The notes beneath the pieces were generated by a model. It was not told the origin of the DNA and did not search any database. It saw nothing but the letters and a program-made list of their open reading frames with translations. The position numbers and the translations under genes are program-made. DNA of 64,000 nucleotides, from the IMG/VR virus record IMGVR_UViG_3300033145_003233, positions 1 to 64,000 of that record; one strand, 5' to 3'. This document shows positions 12,200 through 46,994 of this stretch, one piece after another (the first letter of the stretch is position 1; each line of letters opens with the position of its first letter).

Positions 12200-15100
12200 T
12201 TACTTTCCGTAAGTTTTTCTCAATTGAGTTAAGGTATTATCATCAGCTTCCTGATTCTGTTTCCCTAAGGTGAACATAGATGACAACTTACTACTTAACT
12301 CATCCTGATTATTTCTTACGCTACTTGCCTCATTTATTTGAACGGATTGAGACAATTTTCCGTCTGAAACAGTGTTGAGTCCTTTTTCGCCTGCAAAAAT
12401 GGCTTTCTCAAAATCTTTAATTTGTTCAGCCTTATAGGATTTTAATTCATCTATTTTCATTTGTAATTCTGAAGCTTCAATTCTTTTAGTTTGAAGCATT
12501 CTTCCTGCTACCCTATAAGCCTCGGACTCCGAATCGCTTTTAGCGATTACCGTACCTTTATCTTTTGTAGTTTTTTCACTATCTAACTCTTCCTTACCCT
12601 GTTGGGCATTACCCGTAAACACTTCAGGGTGATCTTTAGGAGAGTCAGGTTTTGAACCTATTGTTTCACTTTCATGCCCCATCATTCCACTATCGCTTTT
12701 AATATCGGATTCATTAATTTCTTCTGCTTTAAATTTTTCTTCTTTTCCGATTGTGCTATCACCTGAAAACGGTTGGATATCTTTATCTTTAGCGACTGGT
12801 TCTTTTGGAGCTAATTTCTTTGCAATTCTTTCTGCCAAACTTGAAATTCCGTCTTTTGAGGAACCGAATCCTCTCATATGGTAAAGGTCTTTATCAACAG
12901 AAGCTAATTCTGTTTTGCCTTGACCTTGATCTCCACCAGTAAATCTTGAATCACCACCACTTAATCCTACTTCCTTCTCATGACCCATCGTACCATCGTC
13001 TGATGGGATAACTGGTAGAGGCTTATCCTGTGGATTTAAGTCAGAAGGCTCTTGACCCATTGTTGCATTATCTCTTGGTACGCTTGGTTTTCCTGCTGAA
13101 GGAATAGTCTCGCCCTCATGACCCATCTTGCCGCCTTCAGGTCCTTCTGTATATTGGCCTATATCTTTTGAGTCTTGGGCTGTTTCCTGAGAGATTTCTT
13201 TCTCTCCAGCTTGCTTATTTAAAACATTAATAACACTAGATAAATCCATCATAGGTTTACCCACTTTTCCAATTGAATTATTAGCAACTAAATCTTCTTT
13301 AGGATCTTTTTCTGCCCCTGCCGTAACAGGTCTTCCATCAACTTTAATCTCTACATTCGATGTTTGTTGTGGAATTCCTTTATTATTTTGCATATCATTT
13401 TGCATATCATTTTCAAATGGGGCTACTCCTGGAGTTGCGGGTTTCATATTTCCGCCGCCCATTGGTTGATCTTGAAGATTCATTGAACCAGGATCGACTG
13501 CTTTCATTTCTCCTCCACCCATAGGATCAGCAGGTTTCATTTCTCCCCCGCCCATTCCAGGCATAGATGGCTTAGTCTCATCTAATTCTCCTGGAGCTAT
13601 TGACTCATCAATACCTTCTGCCATTGGATCTCCCATTGGATCTCCCATTGGATCTCCTTCGATACCTTCTGCCATTGGATCTCCCTCAATACCCTCTTCT
13701 CCTATACCTCCACCTTCAGCTACTTCTATAGCCTGTCCAAGTTGTTCTACTATTTCTGATGGAAGTTCCAGAGTCACTGTCCCTCCTATATCTCCACCAC
13801 CTTCTTCTGCAAACGGATCAATTTCGTCGCCCATTCCTTCTTCTTCTACAGGAGCATCACTAACAATATCTTCTCCTGCCATCTCATCTGCTAAGAAATC
13901 TTCTCCATCAGCAACAGCTATTTTCAAAGAAGCACAAATTTCTGCTGACTGTCTTAACCCATGACCTGAACGAACCTGATGAGTGATACAATCTTCATCC
14001 CCATCAGTATCAGACCAACTATCTGCTAACTTTACAGATATATTAGATGTATAAATATCTGCCTTCTTTAATCTATTACATACAGACTCAGCAAGTGGCT
14101 TGCCTTCATCTGGACCACTTAAACAAAGGGCATTCTGACCAAATCTTCGTGAAAGTTTTTCTATACAAGATTCTATTGGGAAGCTATCTCCATAACCACC
14201 ATATGCTAATTTATAATCATCAATAACAGAACCTTCTTTACTTGCAGTCTTAATTGATTTTAATTTTCCTGCCTGTTTTAATTTAAGAATAGTATCTACT
14301 TGATCTTTAAGCTCTAACTTATCAAAATCACCTATCTTCATATCCATACTTGAAAGAGCCTTAACAAATCTTTGCTTTGCCCTATTACATGATGGGCAAA
14401 TGGCATTAGCTACCTTTGGTTCCCATTCCCACTGCCCATACACTTGCTTACCATCTTTTGAAACCATATAAGATACTTTATATTTCGTTCCTGTATCTAA
14501 ACAGATATAAGAACCTTCCCCCACCTTAACTGTATTAGGTTTTCCTGTTGCGGGGCTAATCGAACCTATTTTTATATCATTAGAAGAGGCTTTCTTTACC
14601 ACTTCTGGAGTTAATTTCATAACTGTAGCGAATTTAGGAATTCTCCAATTATTTACAGAAGCGGCTGATGGAATTTCTCCCATTTCGGCCTCTTGTCCCA
14701 TTCCCATTTCAGGTTCTGTTGGCATCTCAAAACCTTCTCCTTCAAAACCTTCCTCTGCTGCTCCTAATTCTTCTTCTTCGCTTGGGGTTGTCCCCTGCCA
14801 TTTTGTGACATTGACTTCTACTTTATATGTCATTTCCGAAGAACAATTATTACATTTTCCTTTTCCACCTATAATATCAACATCATCACTTCCACAAGCA
14901 GGGCAAATAGACCCAGGAGGAAGTGGCTCAAGAGTATCTTCTAATCCGCCTTCTTCTCCGAATCCACCTTCTTCGCTAAGATTTTCCATTGGAGGTGTTT
15001 CCATAGCCGGTGCTTGTGGCATACTAGCTCCAGCTCCTGGGCCTTGACCCATTCCACCTTGACCACCCATTTCTCCGCCCATCATTTGAGCTTTCTTTTG

Positions 15101-17806
15101 GATTTCTGTTTTAGCAGCAGATACTTTAATATCTTTTTCACTAGACTGACAAGCTTCCATTCCTCCGCCGCCTGCTGGTGCTCCGCCGCCATATCCCATA
15201 TCCTTAGTTTCCTCTTCTCCGTTTAAGTCGGCATCAATATCTTCTACAGGGCCTTCGATAACATCTCCAATATCATCCGGGCATATCTCTTCCTCTGCCC
15301 CAGCACCATCTTGAATATCAATAATAAGACCACCATCTCCAGAAACTTCCACCTTAATAACAGCGGCTGCTACCGATTCATCGTCAATCATTTCTTGTGC
15401 AAACTTTTTAACTCCAGCAACAAAAGCTTCCTTGTCAGTAATAGGAACTCCTATATCTTCCATGGTAGCTTTAATTTGGTATCTTCCATCTTCAGGCTTA
15501 TCAAGAGCTTTAATAGCAGAATTAAGAGCATCTGCTTTAGTAATAAAATCTCCCTGTACCAAACTATTTAACTTACTTTTTGCTAAAGCATCAACTTTAT
15601 CCATAGTAGTTATATCATTAACTATATGGTTAATAGTATCAAAGAGATCTTCTGCCTTCATACCTGTTTGAGCATTATCTGCCGTTGAAAGAACCAAAGC
15701 ATCTACAGTAGATACACTATTTTGAGAAGCAGTTTTATTAAAATAAGCTGCATTAGCAGCTATCATATTTCTATTCTCTTTCTTTTGAGGTAGAGAATTA
15801 ATAATAGAAAGAAAAGCAACCTTCGTTTTCATGCTGGCATTATCACTAATAAGAGAAGAAATCTTCTTAACTTCTTCTGGAGACTTGCGATATTTAGCAA
15901 TAACATCGGCCACTATGTTTGTAGCAGTCTTAACAAGAGACAAAGAGTAATCCTTATTTGCCCATCGTTTCAAGCCATCTGTCATAGAAATATTTCTTAG
16001 CTGATCTTCTGTAATGGTTTCTAAATTACCTATAAACTTATGCTTAGTAAGAAGTTCTCTAATTTGAGCTTGTGTAATATATTCGGTATAATCTTCTGCT
16101 AAATCTCCAGCTATATCTCTGCTAAAATCATCCCATTGTTTTTCAGTAATAACATCAGGATACTCATTAAAGTGAATAACAGCATCGCCTAATGCACTTT
16201 CGGTTTTCAACTGATCTTCTGTAATGGTTTCGTATGTACCTTTGCGAACCTGTGGGCTTTCGCTAGTCGTATCATTAGATCTTTCCGACCCACCAACCTG
16301 TTCTTTGCTTTCGGTAATACCTTCATACACTTCTCCCGTCCTAGGATGAAGCTGTTCTTCTTCTTTCATAAGTTGTTTCTCTGTTATTACTTCCAGATTA
16401 TCAGCACCGGCTGCTGTTTTTATATTCTTATCATTAGTAGCCATTTTTGCTCCTATATCTAATTGATTATTAATATTTTTATTTAACCTATTATTTAAAT
16501 CACACATACTCTGAACTAGAGAATTGATCTTATTACTTAACTTTTCATTTATTTCGGAAAAATCCTCTTTATTTTTTGAAGATTTTTTAGGCATAGTCAG
16601 ACTTCCAAGCCCTCCCAGGTCAGAAGTTTGAGCACCAGGAGCTTCTCCTCCTCCACCTTGTGGTGGCATTTGTTGTGGCATTACTGGGTCAGGGAATTGT
16701 TCTGTAGGAATAGGAGATTCACTATCGGCTGTTATTTCGGGAGAAGGTAATGCCCCATAACCCATTTCAACTAGTTCATCAAAGATACCTTGGACATCAG
16801 CCATAGCTTTTACTAAATCGCTAACATATTCCATAGAAACATTTTCTTTTTGCTGTAGCATACTTTTTACAACATTTTCCATTTCATTCATGCTACTTTT
16901 AAGGGAATCTAACTCTTTTACTCCTCCCAACTTAGCAAGAATTTTACTATCATCAGTATCAAGATATGACTCTTTAAGAAGCCTATTAACATTTTTTGAA
17001 AGCGATGCTACTTTCTTCTCAAGATTTGGAACATTAAGAACACACCTAACCCCACAAATATCACAAGCAGGATTAACTACAAAACTATTTTCTATAAATT
17101 TTAAACCATAATTGTGCTCAAAAATCGCTTGTTCTGCATGTTTAAGCATTTCAGGATTATCTGAGGAGCTTCCGCACAAGGGGCATTTTTCTTCTTTATC
17201 TGTAGGGCTATTATGATAAGCGCATCTTATATCTCCACTATACTTTCTATTTTTCCTATTAGAGACATGAGAGCAATAGTCCTCTGCTGTATTAGCTTTA
17301 TTATGACAAACAGAACAAAGACTTGATTCTACTGAGCATCCCATTGATGTCCCTGTAATATATCCTTCTTCAAGACCTCTTGCCAAACGTGGATAGGCAA
17401 CTTTATCTACCCTACCAATAATATAAATTCCACCTTCTTTTTTATCGTACCACGAATGAACACATTCTCCCCTTGCTTTTTCTACATCATCATTTTGATG
17501 ATTAGTAAACAAGGGAACTCCCACAAATGACTCTGTAGCAGTTTTAAGTTCTTTCTCGCTAAAAGAATCTCCATTATCATTTGGTTCATCTTTTTTAATA
17601 GCAAAGATTTTTATATATAAATGATCTGGATGTTCTTTAGTAGCTTCTTTAAGATCAAATCCACCCAAATCTTCACCCTCTATATCAACAGAAGCTGTTT
17701 TTATTTGATTGGGCAAATTATAAATATCCCATCCTTCTCCTTCTGGCCTGTTTAATGCCTTAATAGGACATTTATAAGAAAAAGTTGCTCTTTTATACAT
17801 TGCCAT
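12200..17806 (-). CDS. Prohead maturation protease fused to a very large scaffold/core region (1868 aa)
   Basis: N-terminal PNDNGDSF, LFTNHQ and GTSMG (His/Ser pair of HK97/assemblin-type proteases); several CxxC ribbons; acidic Gly/Met-rich linkers; ITExQ repeats. Confidence 0.8.
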   Translation of the reverse strand: MAMYKRATFSYKCPIKALNRPEGEGWDIYNLPNQIKTASVDIEGEDLGGFDLKEATKEHPDHLYIKIFAIKKDEPNDNGDSFSEKELKTATESFVGVPLFTNHQNDDVEKARGECVHSWYDKKEGGIYIIGRVDKVAYPRLARGLEEGYITGTSMGCSVESSLCSVCHNKANTAEDYCSHVSNRKNRKYSGDIRCAYHNSPTDKEEKCPLCGSSSDNPEMLKHAEQAIFEHNYGLKFIENSFVVNPACDICGVRCVLNVPNLEKKVASLSKNVNRLLKESYLDTDDSKILAKLGGVKELDSLKSSMNEMENVVKSMLQQKENVSMEYVSDLVKAMADVQGIFDELVEMGYGALPSPEITADSESPIPTEQFPDPVMPQQMPPQGGGGEAPGAQTSDLGGLGSLTMPKKSSKNKEDFSEINEKLSNKINSLVQSMCDLNNRLNKNINNQLDIGAKMATNDKNIKTAAGADNLEVITEKQLMKEEEQLHPRTGEVYEGITESKEQVGGSERSNDTTSESPQVRKGTYETITEDQLKTESALGDAVIHFNEYPDVITEKQWDDFSRDIAGDLAEDYTEYITQAQIRELLTKHKFIGNLETITEDQLRNISMTDGLKRWANKDYSLSLVKTATNIVADVIAKYRKSPEEVKKISSLISDNASMKTKVAFLSIINSLPQKKENRNMIAANAAYFNKTASQNSVSTVDALVLSTADNAQTGMKAEDLFDTINHIVNDITTMDKVDALAKSKLNSLVQGDFITKADALNSAIKALDKPEDGRYQIKATMEDIGVPITDKEAFVAGVKKFAQEMIDDESVAAAVIKVEVSGDGGLIIDIQDGAGAEEEICPDDIGDVIEGPVEDIDADLNGEEETKDMGYGGGAPAGGGGMEACQSSEKDIKVSAAKTEIQKKAQMMGGEMGGQGGMGQGPGAGASMPQAPAMETPPMENLSEEGGFGEEGGLEDTLEPLPPGSICPACGSDDVDIIGGKGKCNNCSSEMTYKVEVNVTKWQGTTPSEEEELGAAEEGFEGEGFEMPTEPEMGMGQEAEMGEIPSAASVNNWRIPKFATVMKLTPEVVKKASSNDIKIGSISPATGKPNTVKVGEGSYICLDTGTKYKVSYMVSKDGKQVYGQWEWEPKVANAICPSCNRAKQRFVKALSSMDMKIGDFDKLELKDQVDTILKLKQAGKLKSIKTASKEGSVIDDYKLAYGGYGDSFPIESCIEKLSRRFGQNALCLSGPDEGKPLAESVCNRLKKADIYTSNISVKLADSWSDTDGDEDCITHQVRSGHGLRQSAEICASLKIAVADGEDFLADEMAGEDIVSDAPVEEEGMGDEIDPFAEEGGGDIGGTVTLELPSEIVEQLGQAIEVAEGGGIGEEGIEGDPMAEGIEGDPMGDPMGDPMAEGIDESIAPGELDETKPSMPGMGGGEMKPADPMGGGEMKAVDPGSMNLQDQPMGGGNMKPATPGVAPFENDMQNDMQNNKGIPQQTSNVEIKVDGRPVTAGAEKDPKEDLVANNSIGKVGKPMMDLSSVINVLNKQAGEKEISQETAQDSKDIGQYTEGPEGGKMGHEGETIPSAGKPSVPRDNATMGQEPSDLNPQDKPLPVIPSDDGTMGHEKEVGLSGGDSRFTGGDQGQGKTELASVDKDLYHMRGFGSSKDGISSLAERIAKKLAPKEPVAKDKDIQPFSGDSTIGKEEKFKAEEINESDIKSDSGMMGHESETIGSKPDSPKDHPEVFTGNAQQGKEELDSEKTTKDKGTVIAKSDSESEAYRVAGRMLQTKRIEASELQMKIDELKSYKAEQIKDFEKAIFAGEKGLNTVSDGKLSQSVQINEASSVRNNQDELSSKLSSMFTLGKQNQEADDNTLTQLRKTYGK

Positions 17807-18328: not shown

Positions 18329-18544
18329 TTATATATAGATACGCTGAGCAGCAAATCGTCCTAACCCTATTTTTGACCCCTTAACAAAGATAGATATTGG
18401 GCCATTAAGAAATCCCTTAGAAATGATTTGAATTTTAGAACCTGGAATAATCCCCATTGAGATTAAACAATAAGAAAGACTGCCGTTCCCACCTATTCTG
18501 GAAACAACTCCTTTCTGGCCCTCCTCCATTTCAGCTAAACTCAA
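18329..18544 (-). CDS. feoA: FeoA-domain protein
   Basis: LAEMEEGQKGVVSRI...LISMGIIPGSKIQII...GPISIFVKGSKIGLG...AQRIYI is a full FeoA pattern. Confidence 0.85.
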   Translation of the reverse strand: MSLAEMEEGQKGVVSRIGGNGSLSYCLISMGIIPGSKIQIISKGFLNGPISIFVKGSKIGLGRFAAQRIYI

Positions 18545-18548
18545 TTCC

Positions 18549-18965
18549 TTATCCCTTAACGTGTCTTGGTATTTCTATGGCTGCTAACTGATCAACTGAA
18601 TATTTAGGGGCACCTTTCGGAAATGGTATCCCCCATTTTTCAGAAGTATGACTTAAAGCTGCTACAGATGTAGTAAAATATTCTCCGCTAGGAGCATAAA
18701 CTTTTTTTGTTGGATCATCAGGTAATTTTTTTATTCCAGCAAAAAACATTTTCTTTCCTTCTTTGGTTAACGAAGGTCCCATAATTACAAAATAATCTGA
18801 ATCAGTTGTATAATCATGTCCTTCCCATCTTATATATGACAAAGGCCCTATGTCTTTATCAAATCTCTCTTTTAGCCTTTTAGACCTCTCATGATAAGCT
18901 GGTTCCCATTTAATTCCTCTATCTTTGATTCTTTTTCTACCAGCATATTTTAATATATTAGTCAT
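18549..18965 (-). CDS. Hypothetical protein downstream of portal
   Basis: Overlaps portal stop; MTNILKYAG. Confidence 0.75.
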   Translation of the reverse strand: MTNILKYAGRKRIKDRGIKWEPAYHERSKRLKERFDKDIGPLSYIRWEGHDYTTDSDYFVIMGPSLTKEGKKMFFAGIKKLPDDPTKKVYAPSGEYFTTSVAALSHTSEKWGIPFPKGAPKYSVDQLAAIEIPRHVKG

Positions 18966-21243
18966 TAGCTACATTCCCTATACATAAAATCTGACCATGT
19001 GGAATAGATGTTCTATTACATCCTATCTTGCCCTTCGAAAGACAAGCCTCGTATTGAGGATTATTCCCATTTATAGAAGCATACTTGATAAATTCTTTAT
19101 CTTCACTCGCTGCCTTATGGTTTCTTGCTGCTTCAGATATATGTTTAAAAACAGTATCAGATACAGTATCCATATTTTCATTAATAGCTTCTTCATTAAA
19201 TCTCAAAATTCTCCATCCAACATTCGCCAACTTCTGATCTCTATTTAAATCTCTTTGTTGAAAATCCTCTCTTTCATGCCAAATAGCTCCATCAATCTCT
19301 ACCCCAACTCCTATCCTAGGATAGGCGAAATCAATAGAATAAGGCCTCCCTTCCCCTGGAACCTTGATTTGATACTGAGCATATAATTCATAAGGTTGTT
19401 TCAAAGAAGTTAAAACCTTAAACATCTTTTGCTCTAACTTTGTTAATTTTATCATTTTAGGAGGTGGACCTTGTTCTTCTTCTTGTTGTTGCTGACTTTG
19501 TGATCCTCTTTTTCCTATCTTAGGCAAAGGAGTTTCAGCAGAAGCGGCCATACCCATACCGCCACCCATACCACCGCCCATACCTCCACCCATGCCGCCT
19601 CCCATGCCGCCTCCCATGCCGCCGCCCATATCTCCTCCTGCTCCAGGCATGCCTCCCATGCCTTCTCCTCCCATATCCGCTGGCATACCGCCCATACCTG
19701 CGCCCATGCCCATCGTCCCTAAATTACCAGCCTGATCTCCACCAGCAACCATACCGCTAGCAGATGCCATTATCTGCTCCTGTCTTATTTTCTCTACCTC
19801 AGAATCATAATCTAAATCTAATTCATCTAAAATTGTCTCAGCAGAAACCAGACCTTTATCATAACATTGTAACAATGTCTGTATTCTGTTGGTTTTATCT
19901 CTAAGTTGTAAATCATTCCATATTAATTCAGGATAAAGATAAACAACCTTTCCCATTTCTTTTGATTCTTTTTCATCTATAAATCCCTGCATCATAGCAA
20001 GAGGTAAAAAGACATTTTTCTCTACCCATAATTTTAATTTATTTCTCCAGTTGTCTAATCTTCTGATAAGAACCTCTACACCAACCTGAGCACTTGTATA
20101 ACCAGCCATTTCTCCATTTAGAATTGCCTGATTCAACATTAAACCATCTAAAATTTCTTTCCCGACTTGCTCTAACTCTTGTGTTATATTATGAATCTTA
20201 CCTGTAGCTCCATACCACTCATAATCAAAAGCATGATGAGTAACAATTGTAAGATTAGGATCATTAGCAACAGCAGACAATTGATTCTGAACATCTTGCA
20301 AATCATTATCTGTAGCAGGACGATCTTTATCACCTATTTTAACAACTCTAACCGGAAGAATCAATCTCTCAGCAACAATCCAGTTGGCAGTCATAATTTT
20401 AGTTTTATATGCTAAAACAGTAAATAATCTCTGAAGCATAGAAGTGCCATAAGTTCCATAATCGCTTGCATTATGCTTTAAATGACTGATACACCTATCT
20501 GATAATGGAACAGGCTGACCAGTAGCAACTAGGTCGACTAGAGATTGTGGCAAACTATCATAAATACTTCTGGGTTCTTTTCTCTGTACAATCAATTTTA
20601 ATTCTTCATCAGGCATTAAATAATATTCAGGATTATTAGCAATAGGATTATCTCTTACTTCTATATAATCAGGATTCATTAATTTTATGGTTTTAAATTT
20701 ACCATCCGGATGATTGCATTTCTCTCCCTTTTCATCCCTACCTCTACCCCCGCAATGAGGACAATCAATTTCTGTAAATGGGAAAACATCTCCCAATAAA
20801 AAATATTCATGACTAACGCTATTTAATTTATCTGTAAGATCTAAAGTCTTTACCATATCTTCGAAAAATTTTAGTATCTTTCTAGACTTACATTCTAATT
20901 TAAAACCATTCATACTAAAATTAGCATAAAAATCTACTCCTGCTGCCACCTTAGGTTCATTCATATAGTAGAACCTAGCCCATTGCATAATCTCTCTTCT
21001 TCTACTAGCAATCTGCCAGTTTTGAGGAGTATGTAAAGGACTAAAGAACATAGGTTGCGTCCATGCAACACTAGCTCCAGCTCCAGCGTATTGAGCATTT
21101 TTAGTAATAGGAAAATTAGCAGTTACGGATGACGCATATTTTTTATTAGCTCTTGGTCCACTTGATGAATTATAAGCTCCAGAAGCCGCCACCATTCTTT
21201 GTTTGTTTTTAGGTGAATTATCTGATACAATGAATTTAGCCAT
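18958..21243 (-). CDS. Portal protein with Gly-Met linker and C-terminal DUF559 (Vsr-like) nuclease domain
   Basis: Portal-like core (NPDYI; HLKHNA...YGTSML; LILPVRVVKIG) in head-module position; IDFAYP..GVEIDGAIWH...RDQKLANVGWRILRF is a DUF559 signature. Confidence 0.78.
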   Translation of the reverse strand: MAKFIVSDNSPKNKQRMVAASGAYNSSSGPRANKKYASSVTANFPITKNAQYAGAGASVAWTQPMFFSPLHTPQNWQIASRRREIMQWARFYYMNEPKVAAGVDFYANFSMNGFKLECKSRKILKFFEDMVKTLDLTDKLNSVSHEYFLLGDVFPFTEIDCPHCGGRGRDEKGEKCNHPDGKFKTIKLMNPDYIEVRDNPIANNPEYYLMPDEELKLIVQRKEPRSIYDSLPQSLVDLVATGQPVPLSDRCISHLKHNASDYGTYGTSMLQRLFTVLAYKTKIMTANWIVAERLILPVRVVKIGDKDRPATDNDLQDVQNQLSAVANDPNLTIVTHHAFDYEWYGATGKIHNITQELEQVGKEILDGLMLNQAILNGEMAGYTSAQVGVEVLIRRLDNWRNKLKLWVEKNVFLPLAMMQGFIDEKESKEMGKVVYLYPELIWNDLQLRDKTNRIQTLLQCYDKGLVSAETILDELDLDYDSEVEKIRQEQIMASASGMVAGGDQAGNLGTMGMGAGMGGMPADMGGEGMGGMPGAGGDMGGGMGGGMGGGMGGGMGGGMGGGMGMAASAETPLPKIGKRGSQSQQQQEEEQGPPPKMIKLTKLEQKMFKVLTSLKQPYELYAQYQIKVPGEGRPYSIDFAYPRIGVGVEIDGAIWHEREDFQQRDLNRDQKLANVGWRILRFNEEAINENMDTVSDTVFKHISEAARNHKAASEDKEFIKYASINGNNPQYEACLSKGKIGCNRTSIPHGQILCIGNVAND

Positions 21244-21260
21244 TTTTTATCCTATGAATT

Positions 21261-21941
21261 TTAACCATCTATTTCTAGGTCTCGACAAGATTTCATTACT
21301 TCTTCTTTTCTATCGACAAAATGACGCATAAATCTTTTTGGTTCTAAACATTGATTAAATGGATCTGAAACAAAAACATCTTTTGCTGTTGAGTCATCTT
21401 GCTCAGCATTGTCTTTATCTTTTTTCTTTCTTTTTAAAGAATCTTTGCTTTGAGCAGCCCTAGAAAGATATGGATTTACAAATACATCTCGATTTGTTCC
21501 AAATGGAGATGGAGATTCTCCCTTATCTGGAACTTTTCTCTGATATGGTTTTCCTTTAGAGATTTGAGTCTGTCCACAATTATGACAAACTTTTTCTTTT
21601 TCATTCAATGCTGAGCCGCACCATTTACAAGTAGTAATAGGTTGAACTGGATCAGGATCTCCAGGATATTTGATAGGTTTAAGACCTAATTCCTTCATAT
21701 CTTTAAGTTGAGCAAAAGTAGCAAGACCATGCTTATGTCTGATTTGATTAATTTCTTTTTTAAGTTTATCTAGAACTTCAGGAGAAACATTGTTTTGTTG
21801 TGCTGATGATTCTAAACTACCCATCATAAAATTATATTTTGCAACATCATCGCCTATTGAAAGAAATGGGCCAATCCAATCCCATAGATTAGCATATCTG
21901 ATTAGCTTTTTTTTTTGGCCTCTGCTTGTTTGCCCTTGCAA
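21261..21941 (-). CDS. Hypothetical protein with Zn ribbon
   Basis: CKWCG...CHNCG. Confidence 0.7.
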   Translation of the reverse strand: MQGQTSRGQKKKLIRYANLWDWIGPFLSIGDDVAKYNFMMGSLESSAQQNNVSPEVLDKLKKEINQIRHKHGLATFAQLKDMKELGLKPIKYPGDPDPVQPITTCKWCGSALNEKEKVCHNCGQTQISKGKPYQRKVPDKGESPSPFGTNRDVFVNPYLSRAAQSKDSLKRKKKDKDNAEQDDSTAKDVFVSDPFNQCLEPKRFMRHFVDRKEEVMKSCRDLEIDG

Positions 21942-23266
21942 AAATGAGAATGCCTAGGAGACCACTGTTCTCCACAATGGTCGCATATTCTTTTTCCCGA
22001 TCTATCTATACTAGTCCCAGGTAACTTGTCTGGCATGTATTTTTTATTTTCTTCCGCTTGAGCCTCTTTCCAGTTAAAAGGTTTTGTCTTATCAACTAAT
22101 GGGCTACCAGGAATATCTCCTTTTGACCTTGCCGTTTGCAAGCGAGCCTCTGTGTTCCCATATTCTGGGAGAATTGGTTTTCTAAGTTGTCCAGGTTTTA
22201 ATTGATAATTACTAGTTTCTGGAATATTCTTATCTACTTCAAATCTCTTTTGAATATAGCCGCCTACCCAATTACCACTAGCATCTCTATATGAACGATA
22301 ATATTTATCCATAACATTTTCACGCCATATAGTTTCATAATCTATATTCCAAACATCATCTACAACAAGGCCAAAGCCCTTGTTTCTCTCAACTATATGC
22401 CAATCAGAAACAGGTTGGTGTAAAAATGGATCTATTCTTGATTGTTCTGGTCCCCATAAGATAGCATTATCCAAAGATTTGTGTTGTGCTGTTTTTTTAA
22501 GATTAAATTTTTTCTTTTTATTTTTATTAGCAGTTTTCTTTGCTATTTTTTTTAATATATTTTCTACATCTCCGAATTCATTTAATCGAGCAGGGATACC
22601 CTGTTCTTCTTCTGCTTTTAAACTTCCTGGTAAAGTATCAAAAATTTGACCTGCTATTCTTTCAATAGCTCTTGAATCACCCATAGGATCTGATACTGCA
22701 CTATAAAAAGTTTCTACCAGCTCTTTAGAAGTATCTGCCCTTCCTGAGCCATCATCATGTTGAGCGATAAGTTGTTGTGCCCCTCTTAAATCTACCTCAC
22801 TAGTTAGCCATTTTTGCACATCTGCTCCGTTAGAAAATTTTCTTTCTCCAGTATCATCCATCATCGCCCTTTGATCACCCATCATTTCAGAACTATCATT
22901 TAATCCCATTGGGTCCATAGGGAAAGGAGCTTCCTGAGCCTTTTTTAAATTAAAAGGTTTAGTCATTTTACTTTCCTTTTTAGCTGTCTTAATATTAGAC
23001 GGTTTTGTTTCTTGTAGAACTTGACTCAATTGATCTTCAGCATTCTCCATTGTTTGAGCTGGAGCTACCGCATCTTCTACTTGTGTAGAGTTGGCCCATT
23101 TATCATATTCTGCCATAACCCCCATCGCCCCTCCTAATTGAGCAACCATATCTGCCATAGTAGAAACATTGGGATCATTCTTATAAAGAGTATTCCACAG
23201 ATATTTAGCGGCTATCGGATTAACCCCAGTAGGAATAGACATCATATCCATATCCATTGTATTCAT
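21902..23266 (-). CDS. Hypothetical head-associated protein, K-x-A motif rich
   Basis: IKTAK, FNLKKAQ, FNLKKTAQ and FNWKEAQ; terminal Zn ribbon. Confidence 0.8.
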   Translation of the reverse strand: MNTMDMDMMSIPTGVNPIAAKYLWNTLYKNDPNVSTMADMVAQLGGAMGVMAEYDKWANSTQVEDAVAPAQTMENAEDQLSQVLQETKPSNIKTAKKESKMTKPFNLKKAQEAPFPMDPMGLNDSSEMMGDQRAMMDDTGERKFSNGADVQKWLTSEVDLRGAQQLIAQHDDGSGRADTSKELVETFYSAVSDPMGDSRAIERIAGQIFDTLPGSLKAEEEQGIPARLNEFGDVENILKKIAKKTANKNKKKKFNLKKTAQHKSLDNAILWGPEQSRIDPFLHQPVSDWHIVERNKGFGLVVDDVWNIDYETIWRENVMDKYYRSYRDASGNWVGGYIQKRFEVDKNIPETSNYQLKPGQLRKPILPEYGNTEARLQTARSKGDIPGSPLVDKTKPFNWKEAQAEENKKYMPDKLPGTSIDRSGKRICDHCGEQWSPRHSHFCKGKQAEAKKKS

Positions 23267-40142: not shown

Positions 40143-42593
40143 TTAGCACCTCGCCCAGCCGCAGCTTTTGCATGCTACGCAACCTTGTTCTCTAATTAAT
40201 TCTCCACCACATTCTTTACAAACTTCTCCATGTATTTTTGTATCATCAGGAATATATTTTTTCAACACTCTGCTCAATGCCTTAGCAAAACTCATCAAAT
40301 CTCCCTTAACCTTCTCTAACTGATGAACCACGAAGCTAACATCACAACCATGTCTGAGAGAAGCAGATATAAGCCTCGTAATAGCTTCTTGATCTTCATC
40401 TATATGGATTGAAATATCCTCTTGAACAACTTCCCCATTTTCCTCTAGTAAAGAATATTTGCCCCTCTTAATTTTTTTAACAACTCCATATCTAAGAGAT
40501 TTTTTAATGTTCCCATTTTTTCCAGCAAAAATTTCATAAGGATCATCTCCAAGCAATCCGATTATTACAAAATATGAATCTCCCCTAGATATTGTATGAT
40601 AAATATCTACTGGTAATATTTTAGGCCGTTTAGAAGCATTCGTTTTCTTTATAGCAAATTCTCCCTCTTCCTTAGTGTTGTCAACCATCACTCCACTTCT
40701 GCAACCCTTACGATAAACTGTAACTCCTTTACATCCTTCCTTCCAAGCTGCCTCATAAATCTTTGCAACTTCTTCTACTTTTATATCTTGAGGGACATTT
40801 AAAGTGCTAGAAATAGAATGGTCTATATTTTTATTGGCAATAGCTTGCAGCTTAACTCGATTAATCCAATCTATATCATAAGCACAACTGTCATTCCATG
40901 GAGATTTTGTGATATCTGTCTCCCCTGTAATTTCCATCCATTCCTTTACTTTAGGATGTAATATTTCAAATTCTTGCCAACAGTCTCCATTAGCATCTAT
41001 AACATCAATTCTAGTATCTTTATCATTAACATTAATTTTTTTTCTTCTTTTATAACTAATTTGATAACATGGTTCTATCCCAGAAGTGGTCTGGGTAAGA
41101 ATAGAAACTGAACCTGCTGGAGCAGAAGTTAAACAAGATATATTTCTTCTTCCATATTTATTCATCTCACGATACAACTCAGGGTCATCATCTTTTATCC
41201 TTAATAAAAATGGATTGTCTTTTTCTAATTTAGAATCCCACACCTCGAATGGACCTAGCTCTTTAGCCATCTCAACAGAAGATTTATAACAAGCTAATTT
41301 TAATGTTTTAAAAATATCATCTACAACACCTAAACTTTTTTTAGAGCCATATCTGATATTTAGTGCCGCCAAAGTATCTCCCAATGCTGTTGTCCCAGTT
41401 CCAGTTCTTCTTCCCCTAGCACAAATTTTCTTCATATTTTTCCACAAATCCAATTCCGTTCTTTTTATATTTAGAGGTTCAGGATCATTTTTTAATTTTT
41501 TAATTATCCTTTCTATCATTTCCACCTCAATATCAACAAGGTCATCCATAAACCTTTGAGCTATCATTGCATCTGCCCTAAACATGTCAAAATCGAAATA
41601 AGCCTCCTTAGTAAAAGGTTCCCTTACATACCCATAAAGATTAAGCAATAATAAACGACAAGAATCGTATGGGCATAAGGGAATCTCTCCACATGGATTA
41701 GTTGAAGTGGTCTTATAGCCGAACTCTTGATAACAATCAGCTGGGCTTTCTCTAATTATATTATCCCAGAAAAGAAGTCCAGGCTCTGCTGTAGCATGAG
41801 CACTTTTAATAATTTCCATCCATACTTCTTTAGCGTCTACCATTGTAGAAATTTGTTTTTCTCCATCTTTAGCATCTACAGGAAATCTTTGCTCATATTT
41901 TTTTCCCTTTTTTACAGCGTCCAAAAATTCATCTGTCAATCTAATTGAGATATTAGCTCCTGTTATATCATCTGGATTTCTTTTAGACCTAGCAAAATGA
42001 ATCACCTCAGGATGATGAATAGAGATTGTAAGCATTAACGCCCCTCTACGTCCCGATTGCCCCACTTCCCTAATAGAATTACTATATCTTTCCATGAAGG
42101 GAATAATACCAGTACTAGTTCTAGCAGCATTTGTAGTAGCACTTCCATTAGGTCTTAAATTAGAAATATCTGTTCCTACTCCACCTCTCCTTTTAGATAT
42201 TTGTAGAATATGCTCGTCTTCTCTACAAATGCCTCCATAAGAATCAACTGGAGAAGGAATTACATAACAATTTGAAATAGTAACATATTGATAAGGATTC
42301 CCTATCCCTGACATAGGAGATCCTTGCGGAATAATTCTTTTGAAGTCTTTTAGATATTCTATTATTTCTTCGTAAGAAAGGGGCTTTTTGAATTTGTTTT
42401 TTTCTATACGGTGTATCTCAGAAGCAATCCTACGAAACATATCTTCTGGAGTTTGTTCTAACAATTGTTGTTGTTTATTTTTTAAAGCGTATTTATCTAA
42501 AAATACTCTTGCTGAAATTTCTTCCCCTTTGAAATATTCCATGCTCTTTTTTAAAGCATCAGAATACTCGTACACTTCCCCACCCTCTGTCAT
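40143..42593 (-). CDS. nrdJ: Class II (adenosylcobalamin-dependent) ribonucleotide reductase
   Basis: SNC, RRGA, NPCGEIPL, SAPAGS..SGIEP, GCKGVTVYR; C-terminal Zn ribbon. Confidence 0.92.
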   Translation of the reverse strand: MTEGGEVYEYSDALKKSMEYFKGEEISARVFLDKYALKNKQQQLLEQTPEDMFRRIASEIHRIEKNKFKKPLSYEEIIEYLKDFKRIIPQGSPMSGIGNPYQYVTISNCYVIPSPVDSYGGICREDEHILQISKRRGGVGTDISNLRPNGSATTNAARTSTGIIPFMERYSNSIREVGQSGRRGALMLTISIHHPEVIHFARSKRNPDDITGANISIRLTDEFLDAVKKGKKYEQRFPVDAKDGEKQISTMVDAKEVWMEIIKSAHATAEPGLLFWDNIIRESPADCYQEFGYKTTSTNPCGEIPLCPYDSCRLLLLNLYGYVREPFTKEAYFDFDMFRADAMIAQRFMDDLVDIEVEMIERIIKKLKNDPEPLNIKRTELDLWKNMKKICARGRRTGTGTTALGDTLAALNIRYGSKKSLGVVDDIFKTLKLACYKSSVEMAKELGPFEVWDSKLEKDNPFLLRIKDDDPELYREMNKYGRRNISCLTSAPAGSVSILTQTTSGIEPCYQISYKRRKKINVNDKDTRIDVIDANGDCWQEFEILHPKVKEWMEITGETDITKSPWNDSCAYDIDWINRVKLQAIANKNIDHSISSTLNVPQDIKVEEVAKIYEAAWKEGCKGVTVYRKGCRSGVMVDNTKEEGEFAIKKTNASKRPKILPVDIYHTISRGDSYFVIIGLLGDDPYEIFAGKNGNIKKSLRYGVVKKIKRGKYSLLEENGEVVQEDISIHIDEDQEAITRLISASLRHGCDVSFVVHQLEKVKGDLMSFAKALSRVLKKYIPDDTKIHGEVCKECGGELIREQGCVACKSCGWARC

Positions 42594-45641: not shown

Positions 45642-46994
45642 ATGAAGAGAATTATCAATAGCATATTAGATAACGATTTATACAAATTTACCATGCAACA
45701 AGCGGCCCTTGAGTTGTTTCCTAATGCAGAAGTTACATACGCATTTAAAAATAGGGGAGATCAAAGATTCACTCCTGAATTTATAACAGAACTCAAAAGC
45801 CAAATATCTAGAATGATTGATATTAAGTTAACCCCTGATGAATACTTTTGGTTAAAAAACAATATATCCTTCTATAAACCTCAATATCTGGAATATTTAG
45901 CAAATTACAGATTTAATCCAGGAGAAGTAGACGTTATTTTAAATGATAATAATGATTTAGTTCTAAATATCAGTGGGAAATGGCATACTACAATCCTATG
46001 GGAAGTTCCTCTGATCGCTCTGATTAGTGAATTATATTTCAAGATGATAGATACAGAGTGGAAAGGGGAAACAATTATGCAGAGAAAATGTTTCCCAGAT
46101 GACTGGTATGGAGATTTGGGTCTTACATGGGAAGATGCCCCAAAGAGATGGGACAAAACAGATCAAAGGGAAAATGCCTTTATAAAAATAAGAGAGATGC
46201 AAAAAAATCAATGTGGTTTCGCTGATTTCGGAACTCGCAGAAGAAGAAGCTTTGAGAACCAAGACAAAATAATTAAAGCTTTCATGGATTTTCAGAAAGG
46301 AATACAAGATAGAATTGTTCTTCCTGATGAGATAGATGAATTCAAACCTTCTCCAGATAATGGGTTCCCATTCGTTGGAACTAGCAATCTTTATTTTGCT
46401 ATGAAGTATGGATTAAAACCCATAGGAACTATGGCCCACGAATGGATTATGGCAATGGCTATTTTGGAAGGATTATACAACTCTAATTACTATGCCCTTC
46501 AAAACTGGGTAAGAGTTTATAACTCTGATTTAGGAATCGCCCTTACAGATACTTATGGTCTACAAACTTTTCTCCGCAATTTTAATATTAGATTAGCAAA
46601 ATTATATGACGGAGTAAGGCATGACAGTGGATGTCCCTTTAATTTCGCAGACGCGATTATTTCTTATTACAATAGTCTCAATATAGATCCAACTTCTAAG
46701 ACTATTGTATTTAGCGATGGTTTAAATATAGAAAATGCCATCCAAATTAAAAAACATTGTACTGACAAATGGGATAAACCAAGAATTAAATGTTCCTTCG
46801 GCATTGGAACACATTTGACAAACGATCTTGATGGGAGCAAGGCTCTTAATATCGTGATTAAACTATTTTCTTGTGAAGGAATCCCTGTCGTAAAATTAAG
46901 CGATGTAGAAGGTAAGGTAATGGGAGATCCTGATGCTGTAAGAGTAGCCAAGTGGATGTTCCAAAAAAGACCCTTAGATTGGAAACATAGATAA
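45642..46994 (+). CDS. pncB: Nicotinate phosphoribosyltransferase
   Basis: LDNDLYKFTMQQ, DFGTRRR, GTSN, GTMAHEW, LTDTYG, GVRHDSG, VFSDGL, FGIGT, KLSD. Confidence 0.95.
   Translation: MKRIINSILDNDLYKFTMQQAALELFPNAEVTYAFKNRGDQRFTPEFITELKSQISRMIDIKLTPDEYFWLKNNISFYKPQYLEYLANYRFNPGEVDVILNDNNDLVLNISGKWHTTILWEVPLIALISELYFKMIDTEWKGETIMQRKCFPDDWYGDLGLTWEDAPKRWDKTDQRENAFIKIREMQKNQCGFADFGTRRRRSFENQDKIIKAFMDFQKGIQDRIVLPDEIDEFKPSPDNGFPFVGTSNLYFAMKYGLKPIGTMAHEWIMAMAILEGLYNSNYYALQNWVRVYNSDLGIALTDTYGLQTFLRNFNIRLAKLYDGVRHDSGCPFNFADAIISYYNSLNIDPTSKTIVFSDGLNIENAIQIKKHCTDKWDKPRIKCSFGIGTHLTNDLDGSKALNIVIKLFSCEGIPVVKLSDVEGKVMGDPDAVRVAKWMFQKRPLDWKHR

Follow-up and report, generated by a model that had tools for sequence, protein, structure and literature searches.

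The portal protein of an uncultured megaphage of ~550 kb carries an endonuclease domain behind its portal core. The protein, P0001, is encoded in the first 64 kb (hereafter the window) of a 547,943-bp virus record, 33.6% GC (IMGVR_UViG_3300033145_003233), and consists, in one open reading frame (ORF), of the portal core, a linker rich in Gly, Met, Ala and Pro (G/M/A/P-rich) and a DUF559/Vsr-like nuclease, in this order (Table 1). The fusion is genuine, in frame and a conserved design: a first-pass annotation of the DNA had proposed a portal joined to a DUF559 domain, and this was borne out, as the ORF is single, both domains score above threshold and the arrangement is kept in 75 of 75 related loci with enough downstream sequence. 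Portals are usually regarded as passive rings and sensors; here, throughout a lineage of the largest phages known, the interior face of the portal bears an apparently active endonuclease that is under portal-like selection.

The core matches the PHROG 16240 "portal protein" family (E = 1.8e-43, amino acids (aa) 20–432), with further matches to PHROG 2833, 2739 and 64, and its closest cultured relative is gp14 of Bacillus phage G (31.7% identity, aa 46–490). The Pfam family Portal_Mu scored 20.1 bits against a cut-off of 23.9, which leaves P0001 outside that family. An AlphaFold model of aa 1–500, built with 83 homologues, has a predicted local distance difference test (pLDDT) score of 71 and gave 144 Foldseek matches in the PDB at E < 0.001, the best listed of which are all phage or archaeal-virus portals (T4 gp20, lambda, HFTV1, G20c, and SPP1); over its length, the model can be aligned with gp20 and other portals. 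After ~70 disordered N-terminal aa, the wing, stem, clip and crown follow, and the final crown helix is formed by aa 479–496. A zinc insert of the CPHC...C type, to which the first-pass annotation had drawn attention, is indeed found in the core as C161-P-H-C164 ... C176-x-H178, at the tip of a β-hairpin between model strands 152–160 and 182–189. C161, C164, and C176 are at least 90% conserved and H178 is invariant among 83 homologues, and the insert is expected to bind a metal. Judged by the order of secondary-structure elements rather than by superposition, it would sit in the wing region.

Pfam DUF559 (PF04480) matches aa 634–702 of P0001 with 39.8 bits (43.6 bits in the genome-wide scan) against a cut-off of 20.6, which is the sole DUF559 match in the 548-kb genome; PF18741 (MTES_1575) scored 35.5 bits, under its cut-off of 38.2. 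A profile of 114 homologous C-terminal regions matches two PDB structures, namely 3r3p (I-Bth0305I, E = 3.4e-6) and 3hrl (a DUF559 protein), and a model of aa 575–761, with a pLDDT of ~90 in the domain core, gave template-modeling scores (Foldseek TMt) of 0.80 to 3r3p, 0.76 to 3hrl and 0.51 to Vsr (1cw0). Foldseek also matched AbaSI and PvuRts1I in their Vsr-like catalytic domains, at high root-mean-square deviation. The EDxHD motif comprises E170, D196, N208, H213, and D222 in I-Bth0305I, equivalent to E25, D51, H64, H69, and D97 in Vsr, and EDxHD enzymes have an extra acidic residue at the position of Vsr F62 (Taylor et al., 2011; PMC3239194). Alignment to the 3r3p profile assigns the five positions to E604, D638, D651, H656, and D665 and the extra acidic residue to E649, and these are conserved in 116 homologues to 100% (E604, D638, H656, and E649), 98% (D665) and 96% (D651), E604 having been placed by its position in the N-terminal helix and being the least certain of the catalytic assignments. 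The motifs that the first-pass annotation had described as intact, IDF (637–639), EIDG (649–652), WH (655–656) and RD (668–669), are all present, 96–100% conserved among the same homologues, and represent the same positions as the EDxHD catalytic set.

The median ratio of nonsynonymous to synonymous substitution rates (dN/dS) is 0.025 in the nuclease and 0.024 in the core, compared with 0.095 in the linker and 0.133 in the C-terminal tail, values which derive from only 10 locus pairs with unsaturated dS, a small sample whose pairs are not independent. The catalytic residues are under strong purifying selection, and the nuclease is apparently active. In the C-terminal tail, where the model has a pLDDT of 51–75, G750 is conserved to 82%. 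The K-x-A sites that had been noticed after the domain exist as sequence, namely K710-A-A712 (K710 conserved to 94%) and K720-Y-A722 (K720 to 79%), whereas their reading as cleavage sites is that of candidates only.

The active site of the domain is also interrupted by inteins. The window's own portal is intein-free, while at least one intein, and up to five, is found in each of 137 of the 263 family proteins, at recurrent sites near residues 90, 110, 165, 345, and 383 (P0001 numbering) and at E649 in the nuclease, which makes the portal gene an exceptional natural intein collection. Inteins typically persist at the most constrained sites, such as the active sites, of functional proteins. In 13 homologues the catalytic motif is split by an intein that lies precisely between E649 and residue 650, with canonical junctions (E/C...HN/C-D-G, slashes marking the boundaries), one of them being a mini-intein, and splicing restores E-C-D-G. 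As inteins characteristically occupy constrained sites, the one at E649 is taken as another sign that the active site is important. Across the family, both full-size and mini-inteins are seen at at least six sites, and intein-bearing portals reach 3003 aa.

Several more specific roles can be weighed against the make-up of the domain and the genome. In the homologue alignment, the nuclease domain has no conserved Cys able to form a Vsr-type zinc site, a motif that is absent from I-Bth0305I too (PMC3239194). Pfam and PHROG scans detected no NUMOD or helix-turn-helix (HTH) DNA-binding module, and upstream of the domain lie the low-complexity linker and a short basic motif. A scan of the 548-kb genome found neither a C5-methyltransferase (PF00145) nor a gene of the ThyA/dCMP-hydroxymethylase (thymidylate-synthase) family. 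The roles first proposed, namely end trimming, nick or mismatch processing, and ejection as an effector, are hypothetical, and given that both the C5-methyltransferase and the zinc-site Cys are lacking, canonical Vsr/Dcm mismatch repair is unlikely. A 5-hydroxymethylcytosine-dependent restriction enzyme was rejected as well, as the ThyA/dCMP-hydroxymethylase gene is absent and the similarity to AbaSI and PvuRts1I is that of a shared catalytic domain only. The set of four N6/N4-type methyltransferases encoded elsewhere in the genome may bear on whether the phage DNA is protected from its own virion nuclease.

The linker had been described as about 70 aa of (GGM)n, and its length was given correctly. 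The G/M/A/P-rich region spans aa ~491–581 overall, and across the family the tether has a median length of 76 aa (range 56–108), is uncharged and consists of 44% Gly, 14% Met, 13% Ala and 13% Pro. Relatives keep its composition and length, not its sequence. Within this otherwise unconserved linker, the Ala block and the invariant-Gly motif at the boundary to the nuclease stand out, the Ala block being only semi-conserved. In the adjoining junction, K578 is conserved to 89% and G580 to 100%, the model has low pLDDT, and the segment could be a DNA-binding arm or a processing site; a universally conserved cleavage motif was not found. Two database entries, P0173 and P0193, end at the 12-nt (GGGM) repeat of the linker in out-of-frame W/R-rich tails, which appear to be frameshift artefacts of this repeat. 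Gene callers are also misled by the abundance of Met in the linker and place false starts of a "standalone VSR endonuclease" at an internal Met (e.g., P0271, L091).

The distribution of the fusion was followed from several sides. A word search returned 441 relatives from JGI, ENA, NCBI, Logan, and Tara, and of the best 120 nearly all have PF04480, on contigs of up to 515 kb. Among 80 related IMG/VR loci, 5 were cut by contig ends and left out, and the other 75, which have enough downstream sequence, all encode core and nuclease in one ORF. An exhaustive search with a hidden Markov model of the core over 1.84 billion cluster representatives, aimed at where the fusion is absent, revealed a sharp boundary: complete representatives that score at least ~380 bits on the core all have the linker and nuclease, those below do not, and the few seeming exceptions within the clade are truncated proteins, frameshifts or gene-call fragments. 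A search with the domain alone yielded 11 short "standalone" nucleases on short contigs, which start at a Met inside the Met-rich linker. The one inspected, P0271, lies on a contig with a continuous core-intein-linker-nuclease frame that was mis-called, and natural standalone or split nuclease genes were rejected. An assembly or stop-loss artefact unique to one contig, which had been named at the outset as the finding that would undo the fusion, was likewise rejected, because the same single ORF occurs on 75 independent metagenome contigs; the conservation of the domain and the tree described below speak clearly against it too.

When 125 cores, with inteins spliced out, were placed in a maximum-likelihood tree, the 109 portals that carry the nuclease grouped into a single clade (support 1.0), and 12 genuine nuclease-less portals fell on the other side of the branch that defines it. 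This indicates a single origin of the fusion, in which the nuclease was gained once and then inherited vertically with the core; the identities of core and nuclease co-vary (Pearson 0.81). At the C-terminus, the sister portals have either a short low-complexity tail rich in G/P/A/M/D/E or a charged helical extension, and in phage G gp14 the last ~130 aa are G/P/S/A-rich and contain no folded domain. As these nuclease-less portals already have disordered tails, the tail is older than the nuclease, which was added at its end. No nuclease-less allele exists inside the clade among the 109 complete representatives and 75 loci, and the fusion can serve as a clean single-origin clade marker. In public pipelines (JGI), the names "very-short-patch-repair endonuclease" and "intein/homing endonuclease" are given to many of these portals, one NCBI homologue has been binned as a Petrotogales bacterium, and their portal identity is generally overlooked; the automatic label "very-short-patch-repair endonuclease" causes the portals of the clade to be missed in metagenome annotation.

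Portals are dodecameric rings at one vertex of the capsid; P0001 is presumed to form such a ring, and the figure of 12 copies used here depends on this. In the T4 portal, the clip lies outside the capsid, whereas the stem, wing and crown are interior, the crown being in contact with packaged DNA (PMC9958956). Because solved portals have an interior crown and the P0001 model aligns with gp20, the tether should emerge on the capsid-interior side, and up to 12 nuclease domains would surround the inner opening of the DNA channel within the head. The first-pass annotation had placed as many as 12 of these domains at the DNA gate or in the head, which is topologically sound given the interior crown of solved portals.

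By analogy with other enzymes joined to packaging proteins, the most likely function, although a tentative assignment, is that of a virion-loaded nuclease which is freed and delivered with the DNA. The portal fusion would then be a loading device that fixes a small nuclease dose per virion. During head maturation, the prohead protease, whose gene belongs to the same head module and lies ~1.2 kb further downstream, would cut the domain from its tether, for which the Ala block and the K-I-x-K-R-G-K junction provide a candidate cleavage site. The freed nuclease would exit with the DNA at infection and then cut or nick DNA in the new cell, the targets being DNA of the host or of a competitor, or else the phage's own incoming genome, whose processing would thereby begin. 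Such a protein would be no rapidly evolving weapon but a conserved "housekeeping" enzyme that is injected, comparable to the virion RNA polymerases of N4 or phiKZ. To our knowledge, every enzyme so far found within phage heads acts after ejection. Loading and delivery is our best guess in view of the precedent of portal/MuF-fused enzymes, the protease in the head module, and the Ala block and Gly motif at the junction. If the domain is released, this would be a minimal dosing of an injected enzyme, with at most 12 copies per virion, and would extend the portal/MuF "cargo" principle to megaphages.

Several points weigh against delivery. The release cleavage is a proposed step and its candidate site is semi-conserved, and if the domain were left tethered, a linker of ~100 aa could not span a long tail. 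The domain shows zero polymorphism among hundreds of relatives, unlike MuF/polymorphic-toxin effectors, and the portal has no MuF Pfam match at E ≤ 0.1. There is no demonstrable immunity partner: the conserved 138-aa protein encoded next to the portal scored 0.00 in a complex prediction with the nuclease domain, a result that weighs neither for nor against binding. The low copy number also counts here, as does the lack of a recognizable specificity module in the nuclease domain in the Pfam and PHROG scans, and phage G, with a similar genome size, manages without the nuclease.

The next candidate, distinctly less probable than delivery, is that the nuclease stays tethered and acts inside the head on the phage's own genome, in order to nick, trim or hold DNA during its entry or storage. 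Possible purposes are torsional relief while a genome of ~0.5 Mb is packaged, or capture or processing of the leading end. The tether keeps its length and composition while its sequence is free, which suggests that the leash itself matters, and the strict, non-polymorphic conservation, with a core-like dN/dS, is what would be seen in a housekeeping packaging part. The contact of the T4 crown region with packaged DNA, the lack of a universally conserved cleavage motif and the very large genomes of the clade (contigs up to 548 kb) point the same way, as does the fact that Vsr itself is a nickase (PMC3239194). However, an active nuclease amid packaged DNA would be hazardous if it were neither inhibited nor highly specific, and no cutting function is missing, as the large terminase (TerL) has kept nuclease residues of its own. 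The domain is absent from phage G (498 kb) and the other sister portals, debranching inside the head is implausible as branched DNA cannot pass the portal, and we know of no phage that needs a nuclease within its capsid. The strictest form, namely a permanent, never-released, active portal nuclease that processes the phage's own chromosome in the capsid through twist-relieving nicks or through capture or trimming of the first end, is slightly less likely again. A tethered domain would mean a DNA-processing step within the capsid that no packaging model includes; if never released, it would be the first known enzyme acting on DNA inside a virus head, and virion DNA of the clade would have characteristic nicks or processed ends.

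A homing endonuclease, domesticated or still selfish, that acts in the cytoplasm, ahead of assembly or independently of it, on portal alleles of co-infecting relatives and promotes its own inheritance is improbable as the present function, yet offers the likeliest story of origin. In this scenario, a free-standing EDxHD gene downstream of the portal became fused to the disordered tail by loss of the stop codon, a read-through event that is plausible given that sister portals have a domain-free tail. Both the best PDB profile match and the highest TM-score belong to the catalytic domain of a phage homing endonuclease, I-Bth0305I, and phages and marine metagenomes contain EDxHD genes that are free-standing or located in introns or inteins (PMC3239194). 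The portal gene is, moreover, an extreme hot spot of selfish elements, as the intein counts above illustrate. On the other hand, a homing enzyme would find no nuclease-less allele of the clade as a target, the domain has not decayed (its dN/dS is as low as that of the core), and it has diverged together with the core instead of being distributed sporadically. It also lacks the NUMOD/HTH module that gives I-Bth0305I its specificity, and it lies outside any intron or intein.

Still less probable is a non-catalytic role, in which the domain would serve as a DNA-binding or structural plug or anchor in the head, for example by holding the genome end or by meeting a G/M-rich scaffold/protease protein. 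A genome-wide scan found G/M-rich segments, besides those of the portal, only in the 1868-aa protease/scaffold-like protein, which hints at a shared assembly role, and both the enzyme-free disordered tails of sister portals and the basic motif before the domain fit such a role. For binding alone, however, 96–100% conservation of the five catalytic positions and E649 over deep divergence is unexpected, and the restoration of the E-C-D-G motif upon splicing of the E649 intein also argues for catalysis. That the portal nuclease replaces a lost TerL nuclease and makes the packaging cuts was rejected as very improbable, since TerL, although it has no Pfam terminase-nuclease match and no PDB sequence match, aligns with annotated terminases over aa 103–578, including its C-terminal half, and keeps D411, D480, D563, and D566 invariant relative to four distant terminase homologues (three of them annotated), while the portal C-terminus is inside the head and hence on the wrong side for cutting the concatemer.

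The portal is part of a typical head module, with TerL, a protease fusion and the major head protein all on the strand of the portal. In the 1868-aa protease fusion, aa ~57–200 match the head maturation protease family PHROG 18299 (E = 2.4e-10) and PHROG 2774 (E = 3.7e-26), and its N-terminal 302 aa gave no meaningful PDB sequence match. The protein contains several CxxC pairs, four copies of I-T-E-(K/D)-Q, and three of M-G-H-E with one M-G-Q-E variant, and these short repeats could be candidate maturation-cleavage sites ending in Glu. Directly downstream of the portal, the 138-aa ORF is found in 69 of 69 loci, where it is 49–81% identical and more conserved than the nuclease domain; its product has no Pfam, PHROG or PDB-profile match and no usable Atlas lead. 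The FeoA ORF that follows was not found in any of the 69 related loci whose sequence extends far enough past the portal, and appears to be an insertion (moron) specific to this genome.

Table 1. Coordinates of the portal-nuclease gene, its parts and other features in the window, and of methyltransferase genes elsewhere in the genome.
Feature	Position	Strand	Basis or remark
Portal-linker-nuclease ORF P0001, 761 aa + stop	18958..21243	minus	no internal stops
Portal core, aa 1–496	19756..21243	minus	PHROG 16240, portal-fold model, phage G gp14 similarity
CxxC...CxH zinc-ribbon-like insert (C161, C164, C176, H178)	20710..20763	minus	conservation and model position
Disordered G/M/A/P-rich tether, aa ~497–574, semi-conserved Ala block at end	19522..19755	minus	composition
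12-nt tandem repeat, 6.6 copies, encoding strict (GGGM)n	19552..19630	minus	Tandem Repeats Finder score 95–114
Junction segment, aa 575–597, basic K-I-x-K-R-G-K then acidic/Pro patch	19453..19521	minus	conservation
Vsr-like/EDxHD/DUF559 endonuclease, aa 598–714; E604, D638, E649, D651, H656, D665	19102..19452	minus	Pfam, PDB profile, model
Variable C-terminal tail, aa 715–761 + stop, holds K720	18958..19101	minus	weak conservation, many gaps
138-aa ORF, start overlaps last codons and stop of the portal gene	18549..18965	minus	conserved directly downstream
71-aa FeoA-domain ORF, between portal module and protease gene	18329..18544	minus	Pfam FeoA E = 2.1e-17
1868-aa protein, prohead-protease-like N-terminus	12200..17806	minus	PHROG 18299, PHROG 2774
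Major head protein, 290 aa	10648..11520	minus	PHROG 2522 E = 1.2e-64
226-aa ORF between 454-aa ORF and portal	21261..21941	minus	weak zinc-ribbon match; detectable in 14/63 loci
454-aa ORF upstream of portal	21902..23266	minus	adjoining portal in 63/63 loci; no family match
Large terminase (TerL), 632 aa	33639..35537	minus	PHROG 2 E = 3.5e-24
Class I ribonucleotide reductase large subunit	40143..42593	minus	PHROG 84 E = 2e-108
Nicotinamide phosphoribosyltransferase-like gene	45642..46994	plus	PHROG 448
Collagen-repeat tail-fiber-like protein, 1188 aa	1473..5039	minus	
Four N6/N4-type DNA methyltransferases, elsewhere in genome (G000:C1)	94556-95230, 221504-222427, 243245-244138, 263329-264285		

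No description of a portal-DUF559/Vsr fusion was found in the open full-text literature, outside which most subscription journals lie; the jumbo-phage comparison of Iyer et al. mentions no such fusion, and the word "Vsr" has no occurrence in PMC5512222. Among 50,697 GenBank phage genomes, a set to which this genome and its close relatives possibly do not belong, no portal has the domain, and the six weak nuclease-domain matches are helicase fusions, a homing endonuclease and small DUF559 proteins.

Set against individual known proteins, P0001 combines features that otherwise occur apart. It shares with phage G gp14 a homologous core and a long disordered low-complexity C-terminal tail in a phage of ~0.5 Mb, whereas the tail of gp14 is nuclease-free, with ~130 aa of G/P/S/A-rich sequence. 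With I-Bth0305I it has in common the five catalytic positions, the W-H dipeptide and the carriage by a phage (PMC3239194; 3r3p), but it differs in lacking a NUMOD/HTH module, in being neither intronic or inteinic nor sporadic, in having D651 instead of Asn at the "x" position and in being fused to a structural protein. The fold and the catalytic constellation are also those of E. coli Vsr (1vsr, 1cw0) and Pfam DUF559, yet, unlike in E. coli Vsr, the zinc-site Cys is lacking in the portal nuclease and a Dcm-type partner is lacking in the genome.

That a folded domain can be carried on the C-terminus of a portal is known from T4, where gp20 with GFP fused to its C-terminus assembles, and up to about half of the subunits can bear the fusion while prohead function is kept (PMC9958956). 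The GFP, of ~25 kDa, would lie on the capsid-interior side, given the position of the crown. In contrast to P0001, the gp20-GFP fusion is artificial and partially occupied, has no long tether and disturbs prohead expansion.

The nearest natural parallel is provided by the RNase, 2H and InPase domains of portal or MuF fusion proteins, for which injection has been predicted (Iyer et al., 2017; PMC5512222). Like these enzymes and the MuF toxins (Jamet et al., 2017; PMC5576092), the nuclease of P0001 is an enzyme placed C-terminally on a packaging protein of the head interior, while it differs from the portal/MuF effectors in lacking a MuF domain, in being invariant throughout its clade and in having a long G/M-rich tether. 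The first-pass remark that this is not a standard architecture holds insofar as no description of a fusion with this domain was found, but not for the whole megaphage clade, in which it is standard. Enzyme-portal/MuF fusions are already known as a class, and the version with a Vsr-like nuclease appears to be new.

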